Shown piece after piece: positions 1,175 through 59,685 of a DNA stretch of 64,000 bases (its first letter is position 1; each line of letters starts with the position of its first letter). Source of the DNA: Paramoeba atlantica. Its lineage: Eukaryota; Protista; Discosea. Under the pieces are notes generated by a model that did not search any database, was not told the origin of the DNA, and saw only the letters and a program-made list of their open reading frames with translations. The position numbers were made by a program, and so were the translations under genes. Where the stretch lies: NCBI GenBank assembly GCA_977017575.1, contig CDRNVI010000029.1:1-64000 (forward strand). Reading direction: 5' to 3'.

Positions 1175-4100
1175 ATGTCTGAAGACGATCTTCTCAAAGC
1201 CTCACCTCCGCCGATGGACGACGATTCATTTTTACAAGAGGAAGCAGTACACAATAGAGGATCCTGGGACCAGTTTGCTGGAAACGCACATCTCATTAAG
1301 CAACGGAGTACGTATAACGAATTGCTCTACACGACCCCTATTCCTGCGAACATTCCGGAAGAATGGAACATGAACGCCGCCTTGATCTCAACTGAGAACC
1401 AGACACGTGATACGGGACAGGTAGATAGTAGCGATGAGGAAACAAACCACTCACGAGTCATCAGATTACATCATGGACACCAAAAAATGCAATCTGATAG
1501 TAACACTATCACTAAAAAGTTTACTCGATGCCAACCATCTTCCACACCCCCAAGCGTCAAAGGGAATCGGGGAATCGTAAAGTCTCATCGAAAAGCGCGC
1601 GAACCAGCTACACCTCGAAAAGGGGAAGCGACGGAACATAACCCCGAAAACAACTCTCCACGCCAAATAATACAAGGAACTTCCCTTGAAATCCCACCTT
1701 CGACGAGCGAACCAGTTCTCACGTTTCCATCTTCCCAAAACCGTCCGACACAAAGGGAGTGCCCCGCAGAAAACTGTATTTGGAAAACTCGTGCCCATGG
1801 AGGTCAATGGCAGTCGTACTACAACCACGTTGCTTACCGACACGGAAATAACATACCCAATGACTGGTGGACAAAGGAAGGACGATTTCTCTGCGACGCA
1901 TGCGGTCGTCATTACGATATTAGCAAGAAAACTTCTCATTTGAATCATTGTAAAATGCAATCTACACCGCCCTCCTCGCAGCCGCCCTCACAACCACAGC
2001 AGCCTTCACAGCTGTCAGAGTCCGGAGAAGCCATGTACGATATGCAAGGTACGCATAGTCTACCGTCCCTAGAGGAAGTTTGCACGACCCAAATAAGCAC
2101 GTGCAAGGATGTCCCACACCGATGTCGATATCTGTGGACCAGAATTTTTACCGCAGCCCTCTCCACCGCGGTAAACGAAAACTCACTGAGAGCCTGGACC
2201 CTTCTTGCCTTGCTTCCGAAATGCGTCCTACCAGCCCCGTACCGAGGAGGCCGTAAAGCTCACAAGTCCTATACCTCCTACATCTCAAAGCGAATGGAAC
2301 TTTGGATACAAGGCCAATATACCACCCTATGGGCCCAAGCAAATTCGGAGCATGACAGGAAGCGCTCAAAAGTGCCGAATAATGAGATTGAGGGTGAAGA
2401 AGACAAGGCTGCAATACGGGCTGAAATTCTGGTTCGCCAAGGAGAATTTTCCCGAGGCATGGCTGCCCTTACTGCAGCTCCACTTGCACCATACAGCGAG
2501 GAAACCCTGCTAAAGCTGCAGGAAAAACACCCTAGCCCCCATGGTAATCCCATCTCGTGCCCCCTACCTCCCCTGGAAGAAGAAGCTTTAAAACTGGACG
2601 AATCCGAGGTAAGAAAAGCAGTAGATACCTTCCGTCGCGGATCCTCTGCTGGGACTATGGGGCTCCGGCCTGAACACCTCCAAACAGCGCTTCAAGAGCA
2701 CGTCGACCAGAATATGAATCCTCTTACGACGCTCACTTCCTTCGTAAACCATCTTCTAGCTGGCAAAGCCCCAGACGAAGTGCAACCTTTTTTTGCAGGG
2801 GCACGGCTATGCGCACTCGAAAAAGGGGAAGATGACGTGCGGCCTATCGCTGCGGGGGAAACCCTTAGACGCCTGGTGAGCAAGGCAGTATGCCTTTCGA
2901 TAAAAGAAAAAGCAGGATCCTTCTTTGGACGTCGTCAATACGGAGTCGCAGCGTCTGCTGGGGCGGAAAGAGTGATACACCTTTGTCGCCGTCTAATGAG
3001 AAATAATGAAGAAAATGAGAACATAACGTTCTGTAAGGTGGATCTTCGGAACGCCTTTAATAACGTGAGCCGACCCGTCTTCATCTTCCTCACACGAAAG
3101 CATTTCCCTGAACTATCCCCATGGGTAGAATGGTGTTATGCCAATCATAGCTGTCTTACATTCGGCGATGATTTTATCCCCTCGGCAGAAGGAGTGCAAC
3201 AAGGAGACCCTCTGGGCCCACTCCTCTTCTCTTTGGTGTTAGCAGAGGTAACAGAAGAAATTGCATCAAATTCTAACCTACGAACACAATTATGGTATTT
3301 AGATGACGGTGTGCTTGTAGGTGATCCCAAAGAAGTCCGTAAAGCCCTAGACGTCCTCGACGAGATAGGACCGAAGTGGGGACTCTTCCTGAATCTCTCC
3401 AAGTGCGAGATCATTACCCCCCCAGCATCAGCTCATACCTCCGTTTTCTTTCCTGACATCCCCAGTGATAAAATACGGTACGACGGGAACTTCGACATTC
3501 TTGGAAGCCCAATAGGCTCTGCGGAACACTGTGCGGAGTTTCTCATGACACACGCGATTGAACCAGCCCGCGAAACATTAGAAGCTACTGCTGTGTTAGA
3601 AGATCCCCAAATAGCTCTCGCACTAATACGGCAATGTTCGGGGTTTTGTCAGATGGTGTACGCACTGCGCACCACTCCTCCCCAAGCCCTTGGAGAATTA
3701 TGCCAAAAACTTGACTCTCATCTAGTCCAGGCCGTGGAGCACGCAATTTCTCCCTTAGGCGTCGCCGCTCGCGACCAAATACAACGACCAAAACGCCACG
3801 GCGGGTTCGGACTTCGCTCATCAATTCTCCACCAGTCAGCAGCCTACGTTTCTTCCGTCGCGCACGCCGCTAGCTTGGACAACTGGGACCCCACAGAAGC
3901 TGAGGGATTTTCCAGCTCAGCACATGACATAAATGACAAAGTTGGGACTGATCTGGTTGATCCATACACTGGACGCATTACCAAACCTAGTGTGCCTGGT
4001 GAATATCATGCAAATCGGAGCATCCTTTCCCGCCCAGCGAAAAGAAAACTCGCACTATCCCTCAATCACTCCCTTCTCCCGGTCTCGACGGATCAGGAAA

Positions 4101-4975
4101 AGATCATCCCGAGGCAAAAACATCTCAGCCAAGCTATCTCGGATAGGGAATTTCAAACGGCATATTCAAAGGCAGACGCAAGAACGCGGGCGCGATGGAT
4201 CTCGCAGTCCGGAAAAGGGGCCGGAAACTGGGCTTTCGCAACTCCCTCCAAGACCAGAGGCTACGCTTTCACTCACACGGAGTTTCGTACCCTAACACGC
4301 TGGTGGCTAGGCATGGGCGTCTTCCCCGAAGATCGGCCTTGCCCAGCTGACGGGTGCACCCTTCCCTTGCTCAAGAATGGAGAGCACGCTTTGCTCTGCA
4401 AGAACGGCCATGGTATCATCTCACGGCACAACGCTCTGGCCCAACAATTTACATCGTTCTGCAGCAGGGCCTTCCTGGCGCCACAGAGAGAGAAGAGTTT
4501 GGGAAATCGGGGTCCTGGGGGGGCTCTCACGAGACCAGCGGACGTATTTCTGCCAACGGCCTCCATCGCCAAAGGATCTTTAGCGCAAGGCATGGTCCTA
4601 GATTTTGCGGTCACTCACGCACAGCAAACAAAGTATTCGGACTCAGTCCACAATGCTAGCTGGGTGACCCCGGGGTCTTTTGCTGAGCACTTCGCGGAGA
4701 CCAAGGCGCGACAGCGACAAGAAGCAGAAAAAGCAGGACATCTCTTCACAGCGATGGTAGTGGAATCCTTTGGTTCCTGGAGCGAGAGTGCGCTAGCGTT
4801 ACTCCGGGACATCGGAACCCAACGGGCGAATGCGTCCAAAGGGCTCCTTTCACGAGACCAAGCGCGAAACGATCTCCTAACGGATCTGAACGTGACGCTA
4901 ATGCGTTCTCAAGCCAGGATGATGGTTTCGCGCATCCGCGTAGAGGACCCAGCGGATCCTTTGGTAGAGGCTTAA
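1175..4975 (+). CDS. Family A polyprotein, 1266 aa: LsmAD-like, C2H2 and CCHC Zn fingers, reverse transcriptase, Zn knuckle, RLE
   Basis: WDQF...STYNELLYTT; CPAENC...HVAYRH; RPIAAGE, DLRNAFN, QQGDPLGP, WYLDDG; HALLC...RHN, RPADV, LDFAV. Confidence 0.95.
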   Translation: MSEDDLLKASPPPMDDDSFLQEEAVHNRGSWDQFAGNAHLIKQRSTYNELLYTTPIPANIPEEWNMNAALISTENQTRDTGQVDSSDEETNHSRVIRLHHGHQKMQSDSNTITKKFTRCQPSSTPPSVKGNRGIVKSHRKAREPATPRKGEATEHNPENNSPRQIIQGTSLEIPPSTSEPVLTFPSSQNRPTQRECPAENCIWKTRAHGGQWQSYYNHVAYRHGNNIPNDWWTKEGRFLCDACGRHYDISKKTSHLNHCKMQSTPPSSQPPSQPQQPSQLSESGEAMYDMQGTHSLPSLEEVCTTQISTCKDVPHRCRYLWTRIFTAALSTAVNENSLRAWTLLALLPKCVLPAPYRGGRKAHKSYTSYISKRMELWIQGQYTTLWAQANSEHDRKRSKVPNNEIEGEEDKAAIRAEILVRQGEFSRGMAALTAAPLAPYSEETLLKLQEKHPSPHGNPISCPLPPLEEEALKLDESEVRKAVDTFRRGSSAGTMGLRPEHLQTALQEHVDQNMNPLTTLTSFVNHLLAGKAPDEVQPFFAGARLCALEKGEDDVRPIAAGETLRRLVSKAVCLSIKEKAGSFFGRRQYGVAASAGAERVIHLCRRLMRNNEENENITFCKVDLRNAFNNVSRPVFIFLTRKHFPELSPWVEWCYANHSCLTFGDDFIPSAEGVQQGDPLGPLLFSLVLAEVTEEIASNSNLRTQLWYLDDGVLVGDPKEVRKALDVLDEIGPKWGLFLNLSKCEIITPPASAHTSVFFPDIPSDKIRYDGNFDILGSPIGSAEHCAEFLMTHAIEPARETLEATAVLEDPQIALALIRQCSGFCQMVYALRTTPPQALGELCQKLDSHLVQAVEHAISPLGVAARDQIQRPKRHGGFGLRSSILHQSAAYVSSVAHAASLDNWDPTEAEGFSSSAHDINDKVGTDLVDPYTGRITKPSVPGEYHANRSILSRPAKRKLALSLNHSLLPVSTDQEKIIPRQKHLSQAISDREFQTAYSKADARTRARWISQSGKGAGNWAFATPSKTRGYAFTHTEFRTLTRWWLGMGVFPEDRPCPADGCTLPLLKNGEHALLCKNGHGIISRHNALAQQFTSFCSRAFLAPQREKSLGNRGPGGALTRPADVFLPTASIAKGSLAQGMVLDFAVTHAQQTKYSDSVHNASWVTPGSFAEHFAETKARQRQEAEKAGHLFTAMVVESFGSWSESALALLRDIGTQRANASKGLLSRDQARNDLLTDLNVTLMRSQARMMVSRIRVEDPADPLVEA

Positions 4976-5020: not shown

Positions 5021-5259
5021 CAGGACGGGTGCTGGCCGGGTCGACAGAGTCTATACTCACGCCTAGCCCGCGAGGGCTAGGTACCCCAAGTGAGGTAGTA
5101 CACGGGTAGTGAATCTCCTCCCCGTCGGTCAGCATCCTGTTTCGCGACCGTGTCGCTGTCGACACAGGCCCGCGCCTGCGCCCTCCCATATAGCAAGGGA
5201 AGGGTTCACAAGTCAGGCCGTGGAGTGGTCGAAAGACCCGGTCCGGAACGCGCGAATGG
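5021..5259 (+). ncRNA. Conserved structured 3' UTR RNA element (family A)
   Basis: Several helices with compensatory changes versus families B and C; GCGA and GAAA tetraloops. Confidence 0.8.
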
Positions 5260-5588
5260 ATTGGGCGTGGATTGCTTCCTTTTTTATTATTATTGTTATC
5301 AGAATCATAAATAACTTAAGGCAGGTTGAATTACTAGTTTTGGGCTACAACATGTGAAATTGCTAATTTGATTGCTTGTTTACAAATCATATACCCCCCC
5401 CAATGGACCTTCATGGTTCATGTATTGGGTAATATAGAGGCAATGCCGCTTTTCATACTTCTCCCCCCTTAAAAAAAAAAAAAAAAACGATAAAGATACG
5501 TTAAAGATACTTTAACGATAAAGATACAGTTTCTGTACCTTGTTGAATTTTTTTTTTACGTAGTATTCTCTCGGGGCCCAGCTCTTTT

Positions 5589-8500
5589 ATGACGCAAACC
5601 AATACTCCTCAGAGCCCCGCACGCTCGAACGAGGACCACCCCTCATTCCATATGAGTGCAAAGGAAGGAGCTCTCAGCGTAGGCGCTCTCGCCGACGAAG
5701 AACGTGCGCACTCTCTCGGCAGTTGGGACCAATTCCAAGGAAACAAGCATTTGATTCGCGCTGTCAGCACATACGACGAACAACTCTACACTACACCAAT
5801 CCCGGCGAATATTCCTAAGGAATGGTTGGAACGCGCACGTCACATCTCCCAGGAAAAGGAAACCCCAGACACGGGCCACGTAGAGGCCGAAGACGAGGAG
5901 ATGCAGCACTGTGGGGTGAGAAGGCAGAAAATTACTCACGAGGCTACACCCACATCAAAGATCCCCGATGAAGCTCGGACGCTCAAATCCGCAGTGAAGG
6001 ATGCTCTTTCCCACCAAGGTCGAAACACTTCCCCATCGAAAGGAGTTACCAAAGCGGACTCGCGCTCGTCAAGGCGAACACCGGAGCCCCGGACATATTT
6101 CTCTTCACCGCGACACGCCGCAAACCAAAATAACTTCGCTGAAAAGACACAAACAAGAGAAGAGACTCGGGAATGTCCGGCCATGGGATGCACTTGGAGA
6201 AGTCTGCCGCACGGAGGGTCTTGGCAAGCGTTTTATAACCACGTCGCGTGTCGCCACGGAAACGGAGTTCCCGCTACCTGGTGGGATGCAGAAGGCCGAT
6301 TTCTTTGCAACTTATGCGGGCGCCATTATGACATCAACAAAAGGGAAGCTCATCCACAAGCCTGCAAAGGGAACGTTGCGAACCCCCAAATCCCATCGCG
6401 CGCAGCACACTCGAGCGACCCAAGCCACCTTCCGGGGACTCAAACTCATCACTCTGAACTTCCCTCGCTATCCTCTATCTGCACGCTGCGCCTGAACACT
6501 TGCAAGGACGTGCCTCCACGTTGCCGTCAACTGTGGGGAGAAATTATCACCAAAGCAGCCCAAAACGCAGTCACCGAAAACTCTACAGCCGCGTGGACCC
6601 TATTCGCCATGCTCCCCAAGTGCTTACTACCCGCCCCACACCGAGGAGGACGTAAGAACCACACAACTTACGCATCATACGTCCAGAAGTGCATGAACCG
6701 ATGGCTCGCGCAAGATTATGTCTCCCTATGGAATGAAGCAGTAGACAACGCACTCAAGAAACAATCTGTAGCCCCTACAACCGTTCACGACGAAGAGGAA
6801 AAGGCAGCTATCCGAGCAGAGCTTCTAGCTCGACAAGGCGAGTACTCTAGGGGTATGGCTGCACTCACGGCGGATGCTATGGCGCCTGACGACGAAGACA
6901 CACTCCTCAAACTTCAGAGCAAGCACCCGCCCCGACATCCAGACAGTGACATCATCGACTATACGCCTCCGCCCACAGCGCCCCTAATAATGGATGAACC
7001 CGTGGTAGCGAAAACTATCAAGAGCTTTCACCGGGGTTCCTCGTCCGGAACCATGGGTTTACGACCCGAGCACTTGCAAGCTGTACTCCTGGCGCACGTA
7101 GATAACACCGTGAAACCCCTTACTGCCCTTAAAAACCTCGTGAATCATCTACTAGCCGGGAAAGAACCCCTAGAGGTACAACCATATTTTGCGGGAGCCA
7201 GACTTTGCGCGCTTGAAAAGGGCGAAAATGACGTCCGCCCCATAGCAGCGGGAGAAACGATACGTCGATTGGTAAGCAAAGCGGCTTGCAATGCAGTGAG
7301 GAGCAAAGCCAGGGAATTTTTTAAGGGACTACAGTTCGGCGTCGCGACACCGGCCGGTTCGGAACGAATAATTCACACTTGCCGGCACGCAATGACAATT
7401 CATACGGACAACCCCGACATGGTATTATGTAAAGTCGACCTAAGCAACGCATTCAACAACGTTAGCAGAGCAACTTTCTTGAAACTTGTAGGCGAACATT
7501 TTCCGGAATTGTTCCCCTGGGCTAGCTGGTGCTATACGACAACTAGTGCTTTGACCTATCGTGACCACACACTCCTTTCGGATGAAGGCGTCCAACAGGG
7601 CGATCCCCTGGGACCACTTTTCTTTTCACTGGTCTCCTTGGAACTTGCAAAAGAAATCTATCACCAGGCCGACCTGGACTTGCAGCTATGGTACCTAGAC
7701 GACGGGATTCTCATTGGCAGGGCAGAAGACGTCAGGAATTCGTTGGATACAATCGCCAGAGTAGGTCCGCGATGGGGCCTATATCTGAACATGTCCAAGT
7801 GCGAAATAATCACCCCCCCTGCCTCGGCTAACGTTGTAACCATATTTCCGGACATACCCGACGCCAAAATAAACGTGTGCGGTAACTTTAGTGTCCTAGG
7901 AAGCCCAATTGGGTCCCCTGAGTACTGTACTGAATATCTGCTGACACACGCGGTTGAGCCCGCTGAAATGGCCCTTGATGCCATAACCAGAATCCGGGAC
8001 CCCCAGGTAGCCATGGCGCTAATTCGACAATGTGCTGGATTCTGCAAATTGGTACATGCTCTACGAACGACGCCCCCGCAATCAGTTATGAACCTCTGCA
8101 AGCGGCTCGACGACTTCCTAATGCACGCGGTCGAATCCACTCTATGTCCTTTGCCTCCCTCCGCACGCGCCCAAATTCAGCGCTTGAAAAGACACGGAGG
8201 TTTCGGTTTAAAATCGGCGACCGTGCACGCATCCTCCGCTTACGCCTCCTCTGTAGTTTTCGCGGCGGCCACGGACTCATGGGATGCTTCAGAAGTGGAG
8301 GGCTTTCTACAATCGATTGAAGACGTGAATTCGAAAGTTGGTATCAGTCTACTCGACTCAAACGGACTCGTGCGTTCCATCCCGCGCCATAAATGTGAAG
8401 AACTCTCCCCCAAAGCTCGCTTCACCAAGAGATCTCGCGAGGGAGAAACCAGACATCCCTTTGAACCCGCAAATCCGCCTTCCCTTCCTCGTGACCGCGC

Positions 8501-9455
8501 ATTGCCTCATTCCGAAGACTTTCCACACGATACAAACCCCCTTTACGCATCCGAAGATTGCGTTGACGCGCAGCCACCCGACTGGGCAAGTAATAGCGTC
8601 CCCCGCCAAAAAGACATAAGTTACGCGATCTCTGCCACAGAGTTCTCGCACGCATATGAAAACGCCGACGCCCGGACTCGCGCACGCTGGGCTTCTCAGT
8701 GTGGTAAAGGAGCAAGCAGTTGGGCGTTCGTAACTCCTTCCAGAGACACGGGCCACGCCTTTAACCCCACAGAATTCCGCATCCTATCCCGCTGGTGGTT
8801 AGGTGTGCCCGTGTACGGGGAAGAAGGTACATGTCCCAAGGGGAACTGCACACCCCCATTGGACATACACGGCGATCACGCTCTCACATGCAAGCACGGG
8901 GACGGTATCATCGGCCGTCACAACGCCTTGGCCGATCACTTTGCCGATACTTGCAGTAACGCACGCCTAGCTCCCCAACGGGAAAAAAGCCTCGGGAACC
9001 GGGGCCCCGGAGGCGCTCTGACTAGGCCCGGGGACGTCTTCCTTCCGAGTCTCTTCCTCGGGAAACCTATCGTGCTTGACTTCGCGGTCACTCACGCCCA
9101 GCAATCTAAATACACGGACACAGTCCGAAATGCTAGCTGGGTGGCCGCGGGGTCCTTCGCAGAGCATTATGCCTCAGAGCAGAAAGTCCGACAACGCCGT
9201 GAATCTGAAGATGCCGGAAGCGATTTCACAGCTATGGTGGTCGAGAGCTATGGCTCTTGGAGTGCCAGTGCTTTAGCCGTTCTCCGGAAGGTTGGAGAAC
9301 GAAGGGCAAAAGCGTCCAACGGTATCTTGACAGACGAGGCCTCTACGCTCCGTCTCGTGACCGACATGAACGTAACATTGATGCGTTGCCAGGCACGCAT
9401 GATGATTACGCGCCTGCCGGCTGTGGACCCCTTGCCCCCTTTAATCGAGCAATAG
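5589..9455 (+). CDS. Family B polyprotein, 1288 aa: LsmAD-like, Zn fingers, RT, RLE
   Basis: WDQF...STYDEQLYTT; CPAMGC...HVACRH; QQGDPLGP; WYLDDG; HALTC...RHN; RPGDV; LDFAV. Confidence 0.95.
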   Translation: MTQTNTPQSPARSNEDHPSFHMSAKEGALSVGALADEERAHSLGSWDQFQGNKHLIRAVSTYDEQLYTTPIPANIPKEWLERARHISQEKETPDTGHVEAEDEEMQHCGVRRQKITHEATPTSKIPDEARTLKSAVKDALSHQGRNTSPSKGVTKADSRSSRRTPEPRTYFSSPRHAANQNNFAEKTQTREETRECPAMGCTWRSLPHGGSWQAFYNHVACRHGNGVPATWWDAEGRFLCNLCGRHYDINKREAHPQACKGNVANPQIPSRAAHSSDPSHLPGTQTHHSELPSLSSICTLRLNTCKDVPPRCRQLWGEIITKAAQNAVTENSTAAWTLFAMLPKCLLPAPHRGGRKNHTTYASYVQKCMNRWLAQDYVSLWNEAVDNALKKQSVAPTTVHDEEEKAAIRAELLARQGEYSRGMAALTADAMAPDDEDTLLKLQSKHPPRHPDSDIIDYTPPPTAPLIMDEPVVAKTIKSFHRGSSSGTMGLRPEHLQAVLLAHVDNTVKPLTALKNLVNHLLAGKEPLEVQPYFAGARLCALEKGENDVRPIAAGETIRRLVSKAACNAVRSKAREFFKGLQFGVATPAGSERIIHTCRHAMTIHTDNPDMVLCKVDLSNAFNNVSRATFLKLVGEHFPELFPWASWCYTTTSALTYRDHTLLSDEGVQQGDPLGPLFFSLVSLELAKEIYHQADLDLQLWYLDDGILIGRAEDVRNSLDTIARVGPRWGLYLNMSKCEIITPPASANVVTIFPDIPDAKINVCGNFSVLGSPIGSPEYCTEYLLTHAVEPAEMALDAITRIRDPQVAMALIRQCAGFCKLVHALRTTPPQSVMNLCKRLDDFLMHAVESTLCPLPPSARAQIQRLKRHGGFGLKSATVHASSAYASSVVFAAATDSWDASEVEGFLQSIEDVNSKVGISLLDSNGLVRSIPRHKCEELSPKARFTKRSREGETRHPFEPANPPSLPRDRALPHSEDFPHDTNPLYASEDCVDAQPPDWASNSVPRQKDISYAISATEFSHAYENADARTRARWASQCGKGASSWAFVTPSRDTGHAFNPTEFRILSRWWLGVPVYGEEGTCPKGNCTPPLDIHGDHALTCKHGDGIIGRHNALADHFADTCSNARLAPQREKSLGNRGPGGALTRPGDVFLPSLFLGKPIVLDFAVTHAQQSKYTDTVRNASWVAAGSFAEHYASEQKVRQRRESEDAGSDFTAMVVESYGSWSASALAVLRKVGERRAKASNGILTDEASTLRLVTDMNVTLMRCQARMMITRLPAVDPLPPLIEQ

Positions 9456-9510
9456 CACGATGACGGATGTGCAAGATGGGCCGCTCAGCCGGAACTCGAA
9501 CAGCTGGTCC

Positions 9511-9748
9511 GGATGCTGGTCGATGCCGGCAGGGTCTATGCTCACGCCTAGTCCGCCAGGGCTAGGTACTCCAAGTGAGGTAGGACATGGGTAGGGAACT
9601 TTGTTCCTCCCCGTCGGCCAGCATCATGCTCCGCGACCGTGCCGCTGTCGGCACAGGCCCATTGCTTGCGCCCTCTCGTACAACAAGAGAAGGGTTACCA
9701 AGGCAAGCTGGGAGAGGTCGAAAGACCCGGTCCGGAACGCGCGAATGG
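9511..9748 (+). ncRNA. Conserved structured 3' UTR RNA element (family B)
   Basis: Homologous to 5021-5259 with covariation. Confidence 0.8.
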
Positions 9749-9990
9749 TTCGGGGAAAGTCTGCCCCTCCTAGCCGAGGGAGACCTTACCCTCCCTGGAA
9801 AGCTGGTAAGATTGGTAAGGGGAAGTGGGTAAGATGGGAAATCATGTATTTGCTAGTTATATATTTTGCTCGTTTTTAAAATGGGGGGAAGTGAGGGAAA
9901 GAAGTTGAGCAAGTAGGAAAGTAAGTGAGAAAGTCATACCGTACATACATATATAAAGTTAGAACTCGTACTCTTCCCCCCCTATTATCT

Positions 9991-10025
<35 letters not shown>

Positions 10026-10033
10026 TAGAAGAT

Positions 10034-10879
10034 CTTTAACGATAAAGATACAGTTTCTGTACCTTGTTGAATTATTTTCTTTTCTTTATCTCACTCTTAC
10101 GCGCCATGGTTGTTTTAACTCGATCTAAGGCGAAGCAGGTCTCGAACTTCGAGCGCGAGGTGAAAGCACACACACTCGGCTGCTGGGACCAATTCGACGC
10201 AAACAAGGACCTTGTTAAAGGCAAGAGTACGTACCATGTAGACTTATACACTACACCCCTCCCACCTAATCCTTCAGCTGAATCTTTACGGCGAGCGGAC
10301 GAGATTGCACTCAGCATTACGAACTCTGTGGAAGGTGAGACCCCAGATACAGGGCAACAGCAGACAAGTACGGAAGAGGAACTTTTCTCCAGTGTCCGTC
10401 CAACTGAGGACTTCGAATTCCAGTTTGCGGGAGCAGAATCTTCTTCACTCAGCCTATCAAAAACCACAAATAAGGCTGTGAAGGAGAGGTGCGAACGACA
10501 TATCCGGAGGTCATACGACAACGAATATAATTACGAAAAAGATAAATTGCTCTTCCCCGATCTCACTCCTGAAGACCTTACTGTGTCTGTGAATGGATGC
10601 GGAAAAGGACGGAAAAAGAAGAAGCGACCCAAGAGCATCTCCCTTTCCCAATTGTGTGCTGAGTCCGGGGCCGACAGCGACGACCGTGACACCGCACAAT
10701 CAAGTTCCAACTCCCCTAGGCCATACACTCCTGAGGCTGAAAGTGACAGCAATCTGTCTGCGGCATCATCTCCGAAAAAACCGGACACAAAGCCCCATGC
10801 GGACACTTCAGTAAGTCTCAAGCGACACCGTACATACATATATAAAGTTAGAACTCGTACTCTTCCCCCCCTATTATCT

Positions 10880-18353: not shown

Positions 18354-18388
<35 letters not shown>

Positions 18389-18638
18389 ACTTTCCTACTT
18401 ACTTTACTTCGCCCTTATCAACTTCGCCCGCTTCTCTCCCTTATCTCCACCCCTCAAAGAAACCATCCGCGACTTTCCGACTTCACCCGCTTCTTTCCCT
18501 CACTTCCCCCCCCCCGAGCATCCATCCGCGCCTTCCAAACTTTGCCCTCCTCTTTCCCTCACTTCCCCCCAGAAATCAATCCGCGCGTGCTCCACCCCTT
18601 CTTCCAGCAGTGCGCGCTTCGGACCGGGTCTCTCGACC
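18247..18638 (-). mobile_element. 3'-end-only fragment I (variant of the structured RNA end, purine-rich UTR, C6 terminal motif)
   Basis: Minus strand GGTCGAGAGACCCGGTCCGAAGCGCGC ... CCCCCCAATTATTTGC-An. Confidence 0.75.
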
Positions 18639-18654
18639 TCTCTTTTTTTTTTTT

Positions 18655-20744
18655 GCAGTTAATAAGGGGGGAGAAGTATGAATCGCGGCATTGCCTCTAT
18701 ATTTTGACCCAGTATACGAACCAAGTACATAGTAGGTCCATTGGGGGGGTATACGAATTTAAAACAAGCAATCAAATTAGCAAATCTTTTTATTTCCACA
18801 GAAGTATATTTTCTTTTTCTTTTTTCTCAGCCCAAAACTAGCAATTCAATCTCCCCTAGGTATATACGACAAACAAGACACAGTAAAAATAAAAACAAGC
18901 AATGCAGGCCCAATCCATTCGCGCGTTCCGGACCGGGTCTTTCGACCACTCCACGGCCTGACTTGTGAACCCGTCCCTTGCTATATGGGAGGGCGCAGGC
19001 GCGGGCCTGTGTCGACAGCGACACGGTCGCGAAACAGGATGCTGGCCGACGGGGAGGAGATTCACTGCCCGTGTACTACCTCACTTGGGGTACCTAGCCC
19101 TCGCGGGCTAGGCGTGAGCATAGACTCTGTCGACCCGACCAGCACCCGTCCTGGATACCATGGCGTCTTCGTGCTGAAATAGGACTGTCAGTAGAGGCTT
19201 AAGCCTCTACCAAAGGATCCGCTGGGTCCTCTACGCGGATGCGCGAAACCATCATCCTGGCTTGAGAACGCATTAGCGTCACGTTCAGATCTGTTAGGAG
19301 ATCGTTTCGCGCTTGGTCTCGTGAAAGGAGCCCTTTGGATGCATTCGCCCGTTGGGTTCCGATGTCCCGGAGTAACGCTAGCGCACTCTCGCTCCAGGAA
19401 CCAAAGGATTCCACCACCATCGCTGTGAAGAGGTGTCCTGCTTTTTCTGCTTCTTGTCGCTGTCGCGCCTTGGTCTCCGCGAAGTGCTCGGCAAAAGACC
19501 CCGGGGTCACCCAGCTAGCATTGTGGACTGAGTCCAAATACTTTGTTTGCTGTGCGTGAGTGACCGCAAAATCTAGGACCATGCCTTGCGCTAAAGATCC
19601 TTTGGCGATGGAGGCAGTTGGCAGAAATACGTCTGCTGGTCTCGTGAGAGCCCCCCCAGGACCCCGATTTCCCAAACTCTTCTCTCTCTGTGGCGCCAGG
19701 AAGGCTCTGCTGCAGAACGATGTAAATTGTTGGGCCAGAGCGTTGTGCCGTGAGATGATACCATGGCCGTTCTTGCAGAGCAAAGCGTGCTCTCCATTCT
19801 TGAGCAAGGGAAGGGTGCACCCGTCAGCTGGGCAAGGCCGATCTTCGGGGAAGACGTCCATGCCTAGCCACCAGCGTGTTAGGGTACGAAACTCCGTGTG
19901 GGTGAAAGCGTAGCCTCTGGTCTTGGAGGGAGTTGCGAAAGCCCAGTTTCCGGCCCCTTTTCCGGACTGCGAGATCCATCGCGCCCGCGTTCTTGCGTCT
20001 GCCTTTGAATATGCCGTTTGAAATTCCCTATCCGAGATAGCTTGGCTGAGATGTTTTTGCCTCGGGATGATCTTTTCCTGATCCGTCGAGACCGGGAGAA
20101 GGGCGTGATTGAGGGATTGTGCGAGTTTTCTTTTCGCTGGGCGGGAAAGGATGCTCCGATTTGCATGATATTCACCAGGCACACTAGGTTTGGTAATGCG
20201 TCCAGTGTATGGATCAACCAGATCAGTCCCAACTTTGTCATTTATGTCATGTGCTGAGCTGGAAAATCCCTCAGCTTCTGTGGGGTCCCAGTTGTCCAAG
20301 CTAGCGGCGTGCGCGACGGAAGAAACGTAGGCTGCTGACTGGTGGAGAATTGATGAGCGAAGTCCGAACCCGCCGTGGCGTTTTGGTCGTTGTATTTGGT
20401 CGCGAGCGGCGACGCCTAAGGGAGAAATTGCGTGCTCCACGGCCTGGACTAGATGAGAGTCAAGTTTTTGGCATAATTCTCCAAGGGCTTGGGGAGGAGT
20501 GGTACGCAGTGCGTACACCATCTGACAAAACCCCGAACATTGCCGTATTAGTGCGAGAGCTATTTGGGGATCTTCTAACACAGCAGTAGCTTCTAATGTT
20601 TCGCGGGCTGGTTCAATCGCGTGTGTCATGAGAAACTCCGCACAGTGTTCCGCAGAGCCTATTGGGCTTCCAAGAATGTCGAAGTTCCCGTCGTACCGTA
20701 TTTTATCACTGGGGATGTCAGGAAAGAAAACGGAGGTATGAGCT

Positions 20745-20775: not shown

Positions 20776-23700
20776 GCAATTAATAGGGGGGAAGAGTATG
20801 AGTTCTAACTTTCTATGAATGTACGGTATCAGTTTTTTTTTTTTTTTTTTCAAATTTATCTCTATAAATCAATCTACAACAAATCACTCTATTTGACGAA
20901 ACCAAACTAAAGAAAAGAAAAAGAAAAGAAAAATGCATCACCCTCTAATTCAGGAGCAGAGGTGGATCCGGGTCATCTTCTGCCATCCGCGCCACCATCA
21001 TACGAGCCTGAGCTCGCATTAAAGTGACATTCAAGTCACGGATGAGATTTGCCGTCGCCGTTCCCCTGTCCATCGTCCCTTGGGACGTAGCAGAGCGCCA
21101 CGCTCCAACCTTCTTAAGCACAGCGAGGGCGCTGTCGGACCACGAGCCATAGGAGCCTACGACCATGGCCGCGAAGTCGTGCCCAGCAGTCTCGGCGTCC
21201 CGTCGCTGCACCTGCTTATGGCTTGTGGCATAGCTCTCGGCGAATGATCCCGCCGTCACCCCGTTAGCGTTACGGACGAGGTCCGCGTATTTGGGTTGCT
21301 GAACGTGGGTAACGGCGAAATCAAGCACCAGAGACTTGCCTAAGCCAATGCTGGGCAAAACGACATCACCAGGCCTCGTGGGCGCTCCAGCGGGACCGCG
21401 ATTGCCAAGACTTACCTCCCGTTGGGGGGCGAGGTGCGCCTTACTGCAGAAATCGACAAATTGACACGCCAACGCGTTGTGGCGCGTCATGATGCCATGT
21501 CCACACTTACAGGACACGGCATGGTCGCCTTTTGGTCCCAACGGTTGCTGACACCTCCCCATAGGACAGGGCCGCGTTCCGGGGTAAATGTCTGCTCCCA
21601 ACCACCAGCGGGACAAGGCGCGAAACTCAGTAGGAGTGTAAGAGTATCCTCTCTCCTTGGAGGGAATAACGAATGCCCAACTCGCGGCCCCTCTCCCAGT
21701 TTGCGAAATCAAACGTGCGCGTGTGTTGAAGTCTGCTGCCTCATATGCTGAAGAAAATTCCCGGTCGCCTATCTCGCGACAAAGGTGTTTCTGTCGCGGG
21801 ATAATCAGCTTTTCATTCATCCCGGCATCTAGGCTGTGATCATGGTGTGCATTGAGAGGGTTGGTTGATGCGTTATAATCTTTGTGGATTAGTGCCTCCT
21901 GTATTTTGCCGGTTGTCGAATCCACCAAAGTCTTTCCCGCCTGGCGGTTAACACGCTCCACTGCCTCGGAAAACCATTTCGCCTCGGACGGTGCCCAGTC
22001 ATCTTGAGAACCCGCAAAGGCTGCTGAAGAGACATAAGCTGCAGATGAATGTATAACGGAGGATCTTAGGCCAAAACCACCGTGTCTCTTGTCGCGTTGG
22101 ATTTGTGCTCGTGCCGGGGCGTCTAGAGGACAGAGTATAAGCTCCGTAGCGCGGAGCACGGCGTTATCAAGCCTCTGACAGAGGTCTACCATGTATTTTG
22201 GTGGCGTTGTGCGGAGGGAGTAGACTAATTGGCAAAAGCCAGCGCAGTGGCGAATTAGCGTGAGGGCTACCTGTGGGTCTTCTAGTATGCCTATCGCCTT
22301 TAGAGTTGCTTCCGCAGGTTCGATCGCAAACTCACGTAGGTATTCAATACAGAACTCTTCTGACCCTACTGGGCTACCCAAAATGCTAAAGTTTCCTTCG
22401 TGATTTTTCATTCTGGCTGGGATGGTAGTGAATGAGTCCGTGCAACGCGAGGATACCGGATGAGATATTATCTCGCATTTACTCGCATTAAGATGGAGCC
22501 CCCACTGAGGTCCCGCACATGCTATAGCATCCAACGCCCTCCGTACGCTGTCGGATTTTCCGGCTAAAACACCGTCATCGAGATACCAAAGGTGCAAGAG
22601 GAGTCCGCTGGGCACTTCATTCTCGATCAGTTCAGTAATCTCTCGCAGAACCATGGAGAAAAGGAGGGGCCCTAAAGGGTCCCCCTGTTGAACTCCTTCG
22701 GTGGAGGCAACTGTTTGAGAACCATATGTGAGTGCGCTATCGGTGGAGTAGCACCAATTTATCCAAGGAGTCAACTCGGGGAAGTGCTTTTCTGATAGAG
22801 ATATGAACGCCGCCCTGGAAACCGTATTGAATGCGTTACGAAGGTCCACCTTGCATAAGACAAACTCTGGGTCATTCTTTGTGGACTCCACCACTTGGCG
22901 GCAGAGGTGGATAACCCTTTCGGAGCCAGATGCCGTTGCCACACCATATTGACGTCCTTGGAAAAGTGTGCTAGCTTTGGACTTTACAACAGAGCAGGCA
23001 GCCTTGCTGACCATGCGGCGCAACGTTTCCCCTGCTGCGATAGGTCTTACATCATTTTGCCCTTTCTGCAATGCACACAATCGAGCCCCTGCGTAATATT
23101 GTTGTGCTTCAACTGGAGCCTTACCGGCGAGTAGGTGATTGGCAAGCTTTGTGAGACTCTCGAGGGGATGAACATCCGTGTCAGTTCCAGCGAATAATGC
23201 CGCTTGTATGTGTTCCGCTCGTAGCGCCATGGTTCCACCTGAGGAGCCCCTGTTAAAGCTTTGGATCGCCTTTCGTACATCATCCTCATTGACAGTCAAG
23301 GAAATGATTTCGTTGGAGGACGGTGCGCTTTGGCGTAGTGGACCGAACAGCCGGCTCGGGTGCTTGGTGACTAGTTTGTTATATGTCTCCTCATTGTCGG
23401 GTGCCATTGGCGCCGAAGTGAGTGCAGCTATTCCTCGAGAAACTTCTCCTTGACGGACCAGTAGTTCGGAGCGAATCGCTTTCTTTTCCTCATCCAGTAG
23501 TGTACCTGCTCCGGATCCTTGCTTCCTCTTCTTCTGGTGTTCAAGTACAGCTTCTTTCCACAGGGCTGAATATTCGTGTGCTTCCCAGCGATCCAGACAT
23601 TTCCGCACGTGGGAGGCGTACGAGCTATTTCCCTTTCGTCCTCTTCTATGCGGGGCTGGAAGGACACATTTCGGAAGCATCGCTAGTCGTGTCCATGCAG

Positions 23701-33374: not shown

Positions 33375-36131
33375 ATGAAACGCGGCATTGCCTCTATATT
33401 ACCCAATACATGAACCATGAAGGTCCATTGGGGGGGGTATATGATTTGTAAACAAGCAATCAAATTTGCAATTTCACATGTTGTAGCCCAAAACTAGTAA
33501 TTCAACCTGCCTTAAGTTATTTATGATTCTGATAACAATAATAATAAAAAAGGAAGCAATCCACGCCCAATCCATCCGCGCGTTCTGGACCGGGTCTTTC
33601 GACCTCTCCACGGCCTGACTTGTGGACCCTTCCCTTGTTATACGGGAGGGCGCAGGCGCGGGCCTGTGTCGACAGCGACACGGTCGCGAAACAGGATGCT
33701 GGCCGACGGGGAGGAGATTCACTACCCGTGTACTACCTCACTTGGGGTACCTAGCCCTGACGGACTAGGCGTGAGCATAGACTCTGTCGACTCGACCAGC
33801 ATCCGGGCCAGAGGTATGTGGCCCTGCGCATGGCGTCTTCACCATGCCCCTAAGCGCCTTCAAGGGGGGCGTTAGGGTCACTGACAACTATCCTGGAGAC
33901 CATCATCCGAGCCTGGGAACGCATCAACGTGACATTAAGCTCTTTCAAAAGGATGTTTCGTGCCTGAGTGTCTGTTAAAAGACCGTTCGACGCGTTGGCA
34001 CGTAACGCTCCCACCTTCCACAGGACCGTCAAGGCACTTCTGCTCCATGAGCCGAAGGACTCAACAATCATCGCTGTGAACAGTAACTGAGCTGCTTCCG
34101 CTTCTTGGCGCTGCTTCCCTTTCGTTTCAGAGAAGTGTTCAGCAAAAGACCCCGCAGCCACCCAGCTAGCATTACGGACTGAGTCCAAATACTTCAATTG
34201 CTGTGCGTGGGTGACTGCGAAGTCTAGAACCATGCCACCTCCCAGTTCATAGTTGGGAAGAAAAACATCGCCTGGTCTGGTGAGTCCTCCTCCAGGTCCC
34301 CGATTTCCGAGACTTTTTTCCCTTTGCGGAGCCATATTGGCCTTGCTGCAGAAGGAGGTGAACTGTTGGCAGACCGCATTGTGGCGGGTGATGAGGCCGT
34401 GCCCGTTCTTACACATCAGAGCGTGTTCCCCATTTTTTAGGAGTGGTAAGTCACATCCTTTTGCTGGACAAGGTCGATCCTCTGGATAGACATCCATGCC
34501 CAACCACCAGCGGGATAAGGTACGGAACTCTGTGGGAGTGAAAGCGTATCCCTTGGTCCGCGAAGGAGTCACGAAAGCCCAGCTCCCGGCACCTTTTCCG
34601 GACTCTGATATCCATCTTGCACGTGTGCGGGGGTCAGCCTTCTCGTATGCAGTGTTAAATTCTTGCTGGGAAATGACTTGGCTGAGCTGTTGCTGTCTAG
34701 GGATAATCATCTCCGGTTCGGCCGTCTTCTCTGATCCCTTTTTATTCTGCGTCCGCCGAGGGCGTTTTGTTTGCGAGGACAAGCTATGACGTAGATCAGA
34801 ATCTGTGCGAGGATTGTTTTGTTTGGGAGTGCGTCCTGTGCATGGGTCCACAAGCGCTGCGCCTGCTTTATCGTTTACGTCTTGCACGGAGGTAGTAAAT
34901 CCTTGAGCTTCCAAGGGGTCCCAGTCGTCCATGTCGGCGGCATGAGCGACAGATGAAACGTATGCCGCCGTTGCGTGCAGTGTCGACGATCTGAGACCGA
35001 AGCCTCCGTGGCGCTTCCTGCGTAGTATTTGATCACGTGCGGGGGGGTCCAGGGGAAAAAGTGCCCGCTCTACAGCCGTCATGACAGAGTCGTCTAGTAA
35101 AAAGCAAAGATGGGTAAGGGCCTGTGGGGGTGTAGTTCGGAGGGCGTATACCATCTGACAGAACCCCGTGCATTGACGGATTAGAGCACTGGCCACTTGG
35201 GGGTCTCCTATTAAACCTATGGCGGCTAGGGTCTCACGTGCTGGGTCGATGGCGTGCTGCATCAGGAACTCCGCGCAGTGCTCGTCCGACCCGATCGGGC
35301 TCCCAAGGATATCGAAGTTCCCGTCGTGCCGGATTTTCGCCTTTGGGATCTCGGGAAAAAGCGTTGTGAGATGAGCCGAGGCAGGTGGCGTTATGATTTC
35401 ACTTTTCGCAGGATTCAAGAAAAGTCCGCACCGGGGGCCAACTTCCGAAAAAACGTCCACCGCCTTTCTGACCTCCACAGCCTCTCCCATAAGAACCCCA
35501 TCGTCGAGGTACCACAGTTGCGAGTCAAGGTTTGATCGGGATGCTATCTCTTCCGTCACCTCAGAAAGCACTAGAGAGAATAAAAGTGGGCCTAAAGGAT
35601 CACCTTGTTGCACGCCTTCGGCTGAAGAGATGAAATTGTTTCCATACGTGAGGCAACTCGGACTTGAGTAGCACCATTCTACCCAGGGCGAAAGTTCCGG
35701 AAAATGTAGGCGCGTGAGAAGAGCGAAGACGGGTCTGCTGACGTTGTTAAAAGCGTTTCGCAGATCAACCTTGCAGAAAACCAGCTTGTCGCTCCCCATG
35801 TTGTTGAGCATAGTTTTCCGACAGAGATGAATCACTCGTTCGGACCCCGCAGATGCGGCAACACCGTATTGGCGTCCACGGAATAACGTTCCCGCCTTCT
35901 CCTTTACGGCGAGGCATGCTGCCTTGCTTACTAGGCGCCTTAGGGTTTCGCCCGCCGCAATGGGACGTACGTCGTCTTCGCCTTTCTCCAGAGCACAAAG
36001 TCTAGCTCCTGCATAGGACTGCTGAACTTCAGGCGGCGCCTTTCCCTCGAGTAAGTGGTTCACGAGGCGTTTGAGAGCTGAGAGAGGACTTACGTTTTTG
36101 TCCTCGTGTTCCAAAATAGCCGACTGGAGAC
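33375..36131 (-). mobile_element. 5'-truncated family C copy (ORF part 33850-36131; structured RNA 33572-33804)
   Basis: RT (QQGDPLGP, WYLDDG) and RLE (RHN, RPGDV, LDFAV) related to family A; tail nearly identical to that of A1. Confidence 0.92.
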
Positions 36132-48312: not shown

Positions 48313-48876
48313 GCAATTAATAAGGGGGGAGAAGTATGAATCGCGGCATTGCCTCTATATTTTGACCCAGTAGACGAACCAAGTAGGTCCATTGGGGGGG
48401 GTATACGAGTTAAAAACAAGCAATCAAATTAGCAATTCTTTTTGTTTCCACAGATGTACCTTTTGTTTTTTCTCAGCCCAAAACTAGCAATTTAATCTCC
48501 CCTAAGTATATACTACAAACAAGAAACAGTAAAAACTAAAACAAGCAATACAGACCCAATCCATTCGCGCGTTCCGGACCGGGTCTTTCGACCACTCCAC
48601 GGCCTGACTTGTGAACCCTTCCCTTGCTATATGGGAGGGCGCAGGCGCGGGCCTGTGTCGACAGCGACACGGTCGCGAAACAGGATGCTGGCCGACGGGG
48701 AGGAGATTCACTACCCGTGTACTACCTCACTTGGGGTACCTAGCCCTCGCGGGCTAGGCGTGAGTATAGACTCTGTCGACCCGGCCAGCACCCGTCCTGG
48801 ATATTATGGCGTCTTCGTGCTGAAACTGGACTGTCAGTAGAGGCTTAAGCCTCTACCAAAGGATCCGCTGGGTCCT
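48313..48876 (-). mobile_element. Family A 3'-end-only copy 3 (last codons, structured RNA 48561-48799, tail)
   Basis: Matches the A1/A2 3' region. Confidence 0.9.
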
Positions 48877-48970
48877 TTGACGCTAGGCGTGAGCATAGAC
48901 TCTGTCGACCCGACCAGCACCCGTGGCCTTTTTTTTTTTTTGCAGCCCCTTTTTTTTTTTTTTTTTTTTT

Positions 48971-54465: not shown

Positions 54466-54727
54466 GTATAACAAGGGAAAGGTCCACAAGTCAGGCCGTG
54501 GAGAGGTCGAAAGACCCGGTCCGGAACGCGCGAATGGTTGAGGAGCCGCCTGCAGGCCGGGTGAGGCGAAGCTGAGGGAGACCTTACCCCCCCTGAAAAG
54601 TTGAAAAGTTGGGTAGGGGAAAGCAGGAAAGTAGGGAGAAAGGTGGGAAAAGTATGTCAAGAGGTGAGAAAGAGGAGAAAGAGAGAGAAAAATTTTCTTT
54701 ATTTGCATAAAAACAAAAAAAAAAAAA
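54466..54727 (+). mobile_element. 3'-end-only fragment J (3' half of the structured RNA plus purine-rich UTR)
   Basis: CAGGCCGTGGAGAGGTCGAAAGACCCGGTCCGGAACGCGCGAATGG. Confidence 0.8.
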
Positions 54728-57800: not shown

Positions 57801-59253
57801 CCACGGAGGCAGAAGGTTTCGAAGAAGCCGTAAGCGATGTCAATAAAAGGGTGGGGAAAGACATCGTAGACATTCAATCAGGGAGAATACCGAAAGGTTT
57901 CGCCTTGTCATCCACTCCGCCTTTCAGTAAACGTGGCATTACAGAATCCAGCACCGAATCAGTAATCCCTCGGCAACGAGATCTAAGCGATGCAATCTCA
58001 TCTCACGAGTTTCATCAAGCACTCTCCCTCGCTGACCCACGTACGAGGGCTCGATGGATTTCGGAAACGGGGCACGGAGCAGCAGAATGGGCTTTTGTAT
58101 TGCCGTCGAAAAAGAACGGCCACGCTTATACCCCAACCGAGTTTCGGACTCTGGTACGTTGGTGGCTAGGGGAGCAAATATATCCGGGTCCCCGATCTTG
58201 TCCCATGGAGAAGTGCACCCAACCGTTGGGTCCTGAGGGCGATCACGCATTGGCTTGCAAAAGTGGACATGGTATCACCTCGCGGCATAATGCCCTGGCC
58301 GCAGAATTTTCTTCTGAATGTTCTAAGGCTGGGTTCACTACCCAGAGGGAAATGAGCTTGGGAAACAAGGGGCCGGGGGGCGCCCTCACCAGGCCTGGTG
58401 ATGTCTAATAGTTCACGTTTTGAAATTTAGCCGAGGGGCGGCTATATATTTGCCTGCTGTCCCTTCGGGGCACATAATTTTCTCAAATTATGATGTAGTA
58501 TTCTCTAATTGCATGGAGGGGGGTGTTTACTCGTTTGTTATATTCTTGTTAGGTTGTTATTTTGTTACGTTTAAAGTTTTGTGCCCACCCACCGAGCCCC
58601 CAGCCATTTGGCCGAGGGTTCCGGTGGGGGGGAACCCCGTTAACAGAGTGACATTGATTGTGTTGTTTTATGCAGGCTTGTTTCTTTTCCATCTTTGTGC
58701 GTGTGAAATGAATGAATGATATGTTGTGTCATTTTGAATTACGATTGAGCTATTCATAGTTGTTCATTTATTCATATATGTTATCAGTGTATATGTTTCC
58801 AGGGAGCCCCTCGGCGTGGATTTCTTCATCAAAAATTTCGGGCTTGGCGAGGGTCTTGTGCTTGACTTTGCCGTCACCCATGTACAGCAACAAAAATATA
58901 CGGACTCAGTCCGTGACGCTAACGGGGTGACGGCCGGGTCATTTGCGGAGCGCTATGCTACCGAGAACAAGAGAAGACAACGGGAAGAGGCTAACACGGC
59001 TGGGTACAAGTTCGCGGCAATGGTAGTAGAGTCCTATGGCGCCTGGAGTCCCAGCGCCATGGCGGTTCTTAGGGAAATTTCAACTAGAAAGATGGCGAAC
59101 TCAGGGGATACCCTCCCTAAAAGCGATGCCTTGCATCACCTCCTTTCATCTCTCAACATTACCCTCATGAGGTCGCAAGCTCGCATGCTTGTATTACGAT
59201 CCCCAGCGGCGGTCCCTGACACAGTGCTCTTAGGTTACGGAAAAGAGGAGTAG
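54845..59253 (+). CDS. Family G polyprotein (LsmAD-like, Zn fingers, RT, RLE), interrupted within the RLE
   Basis: WDQFEANK...STYDEALYTTKL...EEIARSI; QQGDPLGP; WYLDDG; RPGDV joins FIKNFGLGEGLVLDFAV when 58406-58824 is removed. Confidence 0.85.
58406..58824. other. 419-nt insertion in the family G ORF
   Basis: Removal restores the frame; TCT at both junctions; 9-bp inverted repeat at 58430-58438 and 58807-58815. Confidence 0.8.
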
Positions 59254-59663: not shown

Positions 59664-59664
<1 letters not shown>

Positions 59665-59685
59665 GATAAAGATAAAAAGCTAAAT

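Follow-up and report, generated by a model that had tools for sequence, protein, structure and literature searches.

The window analysed here comprises the 64,000 nucleotides (nt) at positions 1 to 64,000 of contig CDRNVI010000029.1 (forward strand; Paramoeba atlantica assembly GCA_977017575.1), and is filled by a dense head-to-tail array of single-ORF (open reading frame) retrotransposons. The subject of this report is a structured RNA module, 242-247 nt long in the window's seven full copies, that lies in the 3′ untranslated region (UTR) of families A, B and C of these elements. The elements themselves are poly(A)-tailed, spliced-leader-headed, non-LTR (long terminal repeat) retrotransposons of a euglenozoan, of the R2/CRE-like kind that combines a reverse transcriptase (RT) with a restriction-like endonuclease (RLE). 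Translation of the family A ORF revealed an N-terminal C2H2 finger, the RT, and a C-terminal CCHC and RLE region, in that order; Pfam RVT_1 matches this ORF with E=1e-18, and the nearest solved structures are R2 proteins, through a weak match (E=3e-6) confined to the RT core. Pairwise protein identity among ORF families A, B, D and z of the window is 47-57%, and A and C share 71%. Every element closes with poly(A) and the next one opens directly behind it with a leader containing ACAGTTTCTGTAC, which is the hallmark of a euglenozoan spliced leader. Module copies and the ORFs belonging to them are distributed as follows.

1175..4975 (+): family A ORF, 1266 amino acids, from the ORF list
5021..5262 (+): focal module copy, family A, 46 nt past the stop codon of the ORF at 1175-4975; covariance model (CM) score 297.7 bits
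5251..5259 (+): 3′ edge of the shared block (CGCGAAUGG); the families diverge downstream of it in the all-copy alignment
5263..5487 (+): remaining family A 3′ UTR, with a U-rich/AT-rich stretch, a terminal block ending in CUUCUCCCCCCUUA, and poly(A) at 5471-5487
5589-9455 (+): family B ORF, upstream of the module at 9505-9751
9505..9751 (+): family B module, 82.5% identical to A; CM score 252 bits
18604..18642 (-): 5′-truncated F-type copy that starts just before P11, with a GAGA loop, directly behind poly(A); 3′ end kept
18912..19153 (-): A-type module; CM score 294.5 bits
19199-20779 (-): 5′-truncated A ORF, upstream of the module at 18912-19153
33569..33810 (-): family C module, 94% identical to A
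33850-36114 (-): family C ORF, 71% protein identity to A, upstream of the module at 33569-33810
48558..48799 (-): A-type module, found by the CM
48882-48928 (-): 5′ module piece of 47 nt, about 80 nt upstream of the copy at 48558-48799
49212-49458 (-): family B module, identical to 9505-9751, found by the CM
54466..54537 (+): 5′-truncated copy that starts in the P10 loop, immediately behind another element's poly(A); module 3′ end kept
63682-63928 (+): family B module, identical to 9505-9751, found by the CM

A first-pass annotation, made from the letters of the window, had proposed that a ~240-nt RNA follows the stop codon and that seven full copies of it are spread over families A, B and C; the CM placed the focal copy at the proposed location and recovered all seven. 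Families D, E and G are without the module, as that annotation had also stated. In most copies the module starts 34-76 nt past the stop codon of an RT-RLE ORF, with 100-225 nt of AT-rich sequence between its end and the poly(A), and the 3′ UTR ends seen at 5263-5487 recur in other copies. Eight matches to the final 33 nt of the segment are present in the window, where chance would predict none. The module is non-coding: stop codons in all three frames, together with A/B indels of 1, 4, 1 and 1 nt, which are not multiples of three, led to rejection of a coding reading. The fold belongs to the sense strand of the elements, as G-U pairs are kept in all 14 distinct sequences compared and would become C-A mismatches on the opposite strand. 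A reading as remnant of the insertion target was likewise rejected, because truncated copies start inside the module right behind the poly(A) tails of other elements; the module is therefore part of the elements and not of the target.

Further sequences were reached through protein relatives, which led to contigs of one ENA assembly, ERZ24900291 (contig labels L003, L004 and so on). These contigs hold 15 additional module copies, including three diverged types, F, H1 and H2.

L003:13220: F-type copy, 77% identical to A
L009:7879: H1 copy, diverged
L011:2150: H2 copy, diverged

The H copies have a G+C content of 0.45-0.48 and no blastn match to A. Those at L009:7879 and L011:2150 lie about 50 nt behind a shared A-rich tract (AAAGACAAGAAAAAAA...) and lack an RT-RLE ORF upstream, and their boundaries are unclear. 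The H regions extend over L009:7826-8126 and L011:2100-2391, a partial H copy stands just before the ORFs at L009:5054 and L009:15604, and a gag-like zf-CCHC ORF and RT ORFs are found downstream of H copies. Five module copies within 3.4 kb at L004:278-3658 form a head-to-tail string of 5′-truncated elements. JGI metagenome contigs were scanned for the conserved CUCACGCC...GGUNCNCCAA..GUGAG block; the four loci returned do not match the CM and are attributed to chance. Among more distant protein relatives (~40% identity), the L007 3′ UTR is without the module and the L006 UTR is interrupted by the contig end.

The module folds into about 11 helices arranged in two domains. The fold model joins helices proposed in the first-pass annotation (domain 2) with an RNAalifold result (domain 1). 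With few exceptions among the copies, and none among the diverged ones, a CM built on this curated structure outscores one built on the pure RNAalifold structure; the two models score, respectively, 51 and 44 bits for H1, 161 and 150 for F, and 252 and 244 for B. The minimum free energy of the focal copy is -111 kcal/mol (z=-3.3 versus shuffles), and a second single sequence gave z=-3.2. On the focal copy the strands are placed as follows.

5027..5038 with 5126-5137 (+): P1, 12 bp, closes domain 1; 93% of alignment cells paired
5040..5047 (+): X (GUCGACAG), long-range partner of Y
5049-5060 with 5090-5101 (+): P2 (GUCUAU.CUCAC with GUGAG.GUAGuAC), inside P1, encloses P3
5061-5082 (+): P3, hairpin with a GCGA loop; 4 of 9 pairs compensated
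5083-5089 (+): ACCCCAA, conserved unpaired 3′ strand of domain 1, after P3
5102..5125 (+): P4, variable hairpin, formed by a different sequence in each of A, B, F, H1 and H2
5138..5150 with 5239-5250 (+): 5′ strands of P5 (UGUUUCG) and P6 (GACCG) with their partners, close domain 2
5150..5165 (+): P7, hairpin GUGUCG-CUGU-CGACAC; 97% of cells paired
5156-5163 (+): Y (CUGUCGAC), loop and 3′ arm of P7
5169..5223 (+): stack of P8 (CCCG/CGuGG), P9 (GCCUG/CAGGC) and P10 (CCCUCCC/GGGaAGGG), domain 2
5205-5213 (+): conserved unpaired strand UUCACAAGU, domain 2
5227..5238 (+): P11, hairpin GGUC-GAAA-GACC; C-G becomes U-A in H; F and the 18604-18642 fragment have a GAGA loop

All but one of the helices that the first-pass annotation had listed exist, and the compensations between A and B that it had named are real in the alignment: GCCUG/CAGGC to GCUUG/CAAGC in P9, CCCUCCC/GGGaAGGG to CCCUCUC/GAGaAGGG in P10, and GUGUCG/CGACAC to GUGCCG/CGGCAC in P7. 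The GAGA loop reported there for a fragment was located at 18604-18642 (-). What had to be given up is the TACCC:GGGTA knot: GGGUA is the 5′ arm of P4, a hairpin with covariation in all families, and the proposed pairing is broken in F and H. P1 differs between A and B by G-U wobbles only, and its three fully compensated positions (GG/CC to AA/UU and the like) occur only in F and H. One compensated pair is present in P2a, next to the invariant CUCAC/GUGAG; two compensated positions are present in P5 among A, B and F, and P6 shows no variation among A, B, C and F. An equivalent of P5/P6 was looked for in the H copies and was not found. P7 has two compensated pairs (U-A to C-G in B and F; G-C to A-U in H), and compensation reaches 2 of 4 pairs in P8, all four in P9 and 4 of 7 in P10; in the unfitted alignment, the helix at columns 165-175 has six pairs altered on both sides. 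P2-P3 and P9-P10 resemble each other, each being made of a 5-bp helix, a hairpin and a conserved A/C-rich 3′ strand ending in CAAG, and the strands ACCCCAA and UUCACAAGU are candidate protein-contact strands. The domain 2 proposed by RNAalifold (UCGAC:GGUCG), which breaks P7 and P11, was rejected because it turns the compensated pair of B into a C-A mismatch and lowers the CM scores.

The view that this is a covarying, structured, non-coding RNA of the sense strand, already put forward in the first-pass annotation, was upheld by quantitative comparison. A plain MAFFT alignment of the 14 sequences, not fitted to the structure, displayed changes on both sides in 24 of the 77 pairs, against 8.7±2.4 in shuffles (0 of 500 reach this count) and 3-9 in controls with the partners displaced by 1-3 columns; the paired share of cells is 92.9%, falling to 33-44% in the displaced controls. 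This count is conservative, since F and H carry a 1-nt insertion that throws the invariant GUGAG strand out of register and so creates false mismatches. It repeats a count on six family representatives with hand-placed strands, in which the 77 pairs are 97.9% paired and 29 of them are compensated, the repeat being made because the six-representative alignment had been fitted to the structure. For H1 and H2 the CM alignment is unreliable in domain 2, and their P8-P11 strands were placed by hand on conserved anchors; the invariant CUCAC/GUGAG and P6 are uninformative for or against the structure. The module is also better conserved than the ORF: the A and B modules are 82.5% identical, while only 1811 of 3801 ORF nt can be aligned by blastn, at 67% identity. 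The module fold is under selection.

Central to the fold is the 8-bp pairing of X (GUCGACAG) with Y (CUGUCGAC), which crosses P1 and P5/P6. A crossing or switch pairing between the 3′ part of the P7 hairpin and an upstream strand had been suggested in the annotation, and it is supported: all cells are paired (100%, 14 sequences), and of the three pairs with changes on both sides, one (H2, G-C to A-U) lies at a loop base that the P7 hairpin does not use. The competing hairpin P7 covaries as well; both pairings are therefore under selection, and they are mutually exclusive. The X:Y duplex is worth -11.7 to -13.8 kcal/mol in A, B and F (-11.7 in the focal copy) and the P7 hairpin -8 to -10 kcal/mol, the P7 hairpin being the stronger of the two in the H copies. 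The module RNA is either a pseudoknot bridging its two domains or a two-state switch. Y has a third possible partner in the 5′ strand and loop of P11 (GUCGA; GUUAA in H1; GUUGA in H2), which was given less weight because P11 has compensation of its own. A pairing Z:X was rejected upon inspection of the strands, being lost in F and H.

The two exclusive pairings invite a more elaborate proposal, in which the module would be a portable bistable handle: the choice between P7 and X:Y would gate translation of the RNA against its use as template, and the handle would be a shared tag over which the families and non-coding riders, the H copies, compete. This is possible and nonetheless rather unlikely in our assessment. 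RNA-RNA pairing or dimerisation, in which X of one transcript would pair with Y of another and so link two element RNAs, or a long interspersed nuclear element (LINE) RNA to a non-autonomous partner, is very improbable. Every family keeps X perfectly complementary to Y, and a 6-nt palindrome, a possible dimer site, forms the core of X in A (GUCGAC), B (GCCGGC) and H1 (GUUAAC). However, F breaks the palindrome (GCCGAC) but keeps X:Y, a complementarity that suits a single molecule equally, and no LINE of the RLE type is known to need RNA dimers.

The first-pass annotation had proposed either a new ribozyme or an RT-recognition module; the second alternative stands, by analogy with R2 and stringent LINEs, as the most plausible explanation, whereas the ribozyme alternative, with its suggested likeness to the hepatitis delta virus (HDV) ribozyme, was not supported. 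Searches with Rfam 15 at the gathering score gave no family match in the whole window, and at E<=10 nothing relevant around the A, F and H copies, so that the module is absent from Rfam. The HDV-type, hammerhead, twister, twister-sister, pistol, hatchet, hairpin, VS and hovlinc models had no match at the gathering score or at E<=10, and the curated R2 3′ UTR RNA families displayed no homology either (gathering score in the window; E<=10 around A, F and H). A tRNA-like reading was rejected, ARAGORN having reported no gene in the window.

A self-cleaving or self-ligating ribozyme that processes the element RNA would nevertheless fit the complex pseudoknotted fold, the conserved unpaired nucleotides and the strand order P1/X/P1′/Y, which reproduces the HDV P1/P2 topology, and ribozymes are common in non-LTR elements, for example at the 5′ ends of R2 and L1Tc (PMC3185411 and PMC4035085). 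The likeness to HDV is limited to this order (P1-X-...-P1′-...-Y) in a pseudoknotted RNA borne by a retrotransposon. HDV is a compact, nested double pseudoknot (P1, P1.1, P2, P3 and P4) with a catalytic C in J4/2, and in place of its P3/P1.1 core the module has an 85-nt two-hairpin domain; P1 of the module has 12 bp, and Y lies within another closed domain. Unlike the HDV-like ribozymes of R2 and L1Tc, which occupy 5′ ends, the module lies in the 3′ UTR, and its genomic copies are without a sign of cleavage. Full-length reverse-transcribed copies have both flanks intact, with the ORF ahead of the module and the tail behind it. Truncated copies have scattered starts: 14 nt ahead of the module, in J3/2, within the 3′ strand of P1, in the loop of P10 and before P11. 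Only L004:278 starts within about 20 nt of the module 5′ edge. Run X1 displayed a DNA word depth that rises across the module from ~10,000 to 31,000, 40,000 and 50,000, with 270-2,100 in the ORF; the word-depth runs are contig-level, DNA-like and from one study, none being recorded as RNA. The rise is gradual, with no single step, and is ascribed to ordinary 5′ truncation combined with the sharing of the module by several families. The module copies bear no trace of self-cleavage. A cut between ORF and poly(A) would in addition part the coding region from the priming end. We regard a ribozyme as highly unlikely.

The relation of the modules to the ORFs in front of them shows that the module is exchanged. 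Modules 95-98% identical to A stand behind ORFs only 53-55% identical to A (L005:13913, L009:7416 and L016:7104); the ORFs of B and F are no more distant than these, yet their modules are 82.5% and 77% identical to A. In the ORF tree, module-bearing elements are scattered over separate, well-supported branches, L009_5234 being sister to the module-less z family and L005_10001 forming a deep branch. Near-identical modules on distant ORFs, together with the scattered tree, mean that the module moves between families. A junction at 48870-48928 (-) illustrates how this may happen: a poly(A) is followed directly by the initial 47 nt of a module, which reach as far as the P3 5′ arm and are fused, through a short GCG overlap, with the 3′ terminus of an A-type ORF, a chimera that probably arose by a template switch during reverse transcription.

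Another reading takes the fold for a structure that resists exonucleases, blocking 5′-3′ decay, or stalls the RT, and that thereby gives rise to stable 3′ sub-fragments or to frequent template switches, the spread of the module then being the by-product of a recombination hot spot. The chimera is joined within P3, many truncated copies begin inside the module, and the module's DNA word depth is 10-50x that of the ORF. Against this, a single copy, L004:278, starts near the module 5′ edge, the depth excess is accounted for by truncation and family sharing, and a hot spot would leave the compensatory upkeep of 11 helices unexplained. Altogether, this explanation appears improbable.

Several side observations concern the array itself. 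Spliced-leader-like starts (...AACGATAAAGATACAGTTTCTGTACCTTGTTGAA) directly behind the preceding poly(A) are found at window positions 5488-5560, 10015-10075 and 59664-59735, and in contigs of run X5, guessed to be an RNA run, window positions 5510-5557 are fused to many different sequences, like a trans-spliced leader. Behind poly(A) tails one often finds very short fragments, of 60-280 nt, that come from the 3′ ends of other elements and are themselves poly(A)-tailed, as at 20780-20850 (-), 18358-18642 (-) and 5340-5487 (+), many of them ending in ...CTTCCCCCCTATTAAYTGC-poly(A); fresh insertions seem to land at or beside existing poly(A) tails. An insert about 420 nt long interrupts the family z ORF at 58405-58830 (+); it carries GCCGAGGGGC...GCCCCTCGGC close to the ends and a GGCCGAGGGTTCCGGTGGGGGGGAACCCCGTTAAC block inside, and this repeat also occurs behind H module copies (L009 8270-8950, twice, and L011 2530-2700). 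Residues 60-104 of the family B protein (5589-9455, +) gave a weak LsmAD (Ataxin-2-like) match, E=4e-4, under the Pfam cut-off, and N-terminal MLLE/PABC or ubiquitin domains occur in distant relatives, which suggests links to partners of poly(A)-binding protein.

We consider that the module is probably a family-specific RT-recognition handle, by which a template is recognised. According to this proposal, the protein of an element would bind the fold on the transcript that encoded it, and binding would mark that RNA as template for target-primed reverse transcription (TPRT), which would then start at the poly(A) end, 100-225 nt downstream of the module. Domain 1, in which P1 closes P2-P3 and P4, would be joined through X:Y to domain 2, in which P5/P6 close P7, P8-P10 and P11. 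Template switching in reverse transcription would carry the module between RT families, and co-resident families would thus have an almost identical handle in common. The location, strand, fold and covariation of the module, its exchange between families and its absence from family D are shown here; that the protein binds it, that it acts in template choice, and which of X:Y and P7 is the active state belong to what we infer.

Several findings weigh against this proposal. Unlike the R2 structure, the module is not at the 3′ end of the template, being separated from the poly(A) by 100-225 nt. Family D, which was recently active, as its three window copies have identical proteins, has a 3′ UTR of about 95 nt that is AT-rich and without the module, and the G/U-rich 3′ UTR of family z is without it too; a CM built from all diverged members had no match in the D or z 3′ UTRs, and therefore the RT lineage as a whole can work without the module. 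The H copies stand without an upstream RT-RLE ORF, and their P5/P6 were not identified. There is only a small number of independent lineages (A/C, B, F and H), and all sequences except those of the window come from one assembly, ERZ24900291.

The main rival is a post-transcriptional control element (mRNA stability, translation or localisation) bound by host factors instead of the RT. Gene regulation in kinetoplastid-type cells acts mainly via 3′ UTRs, so that a folded block there could simply increase the amount or prolong the life of the element mRNA. Its proximal position in the 3′ UTR, away from the priming end, would suit such a function, as would the ability of the closely related, active family D to manage without it and its cassette-like movement between families, which is expected of a generally useful UTR element. 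However, no copy of the module was seen in a host gene, all copies found lying in retroelement tails, and 11 helices, a crossing pairing and conserved unpaired strands are nearer to RT-binding 3′ UTRs than to typical stability elements. Host control is unlikely in our view.

Recognition by the RT has well-studied precedents. R2 proteins choose their template via a structured 3′ UTR, which in the A-clade (avian and turtle) is formed by a pseudoknot, a hinge and a stem and in which compensatory mutants restore activity (PMC12180492); the recognition core of the Bombyx R2 3′ UTR consists of two stem-loops (PMC11194090). The module resembles R2 3′ UTR RNA in being a structured RNA of 200-250 nt in a single-ORF RT-RLE element, with a fold kept despite sequence drift and pseudoknot-type tertiary pairing. 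In contrast, there is no similarity in sequence or at the CM level, and the host is a euglenozoan and not an animal. The present elements also differ from R2 in that they are poly(A)-tailed, spliced-leader-headed and not specific for ribosomal DNA, and the module is placed 100-225 nt upstream of the 3′ end, whereas the R2 structure adjoins the priming site. Finally, the module is nearly unchanged across RT families 53-55% identical and is dispensable in sister families.

Stringent LINEs offer a second comparison. In eel UnaL2/UnaSINE and zebrafish ZfL2, a 3′ stem-loop rather than the poly(A) is recognised, and such a structure can ride on other elements (PMC4176376). The H copies, with their unclear boundaries and no RT-RLE ORF upstream, are a possible parallel. 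Kajikawa and Okada reportedly observed in 2002 that a recognised LINE 3′ tail can be carried by other elements. These tails, however, are single short stem-loops at the very 3′ end of elements of the APE (apurinic/apyrimidinic endonuclease) type, whereas the module is a 240-nt multi-domain structure internal to the UTR of RLE-type elements. SART1, a telomeric LINE of Bombyx, is reported to need an internal structured region of its 3′ UTR, together with poly(A), for retrotransposition (Osanai et al., 2004). It is alike in combining a poly(A) tail with an internal structured 3′ UTR, and unlike in being APE-type and having an animal host. Taken together, the module is best read as a known kind of signal, an RT-recognition 3′ UTR RNA, in a new form.

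Among LINEs, the RT-RLE kind is the ancestral one, and R2 is now being engineered to insert genes from RNA templates. To our knowledge, animal R2 is the only case in which the protein's choice of template has been worked out. If the reading of the module as a recognition handle is true, it would represent a second, unrelated solution to template choice, from a distant eukaryotic lineage: large, two-domain, internal to the UTR, and swapped between RTs about 55% identical. The natural variants already indicate which helices matter, with the module-less sister families D and z as built-in controls, and the covariation for two mutually exclusive pairings provides a concrete structural hypothesis.

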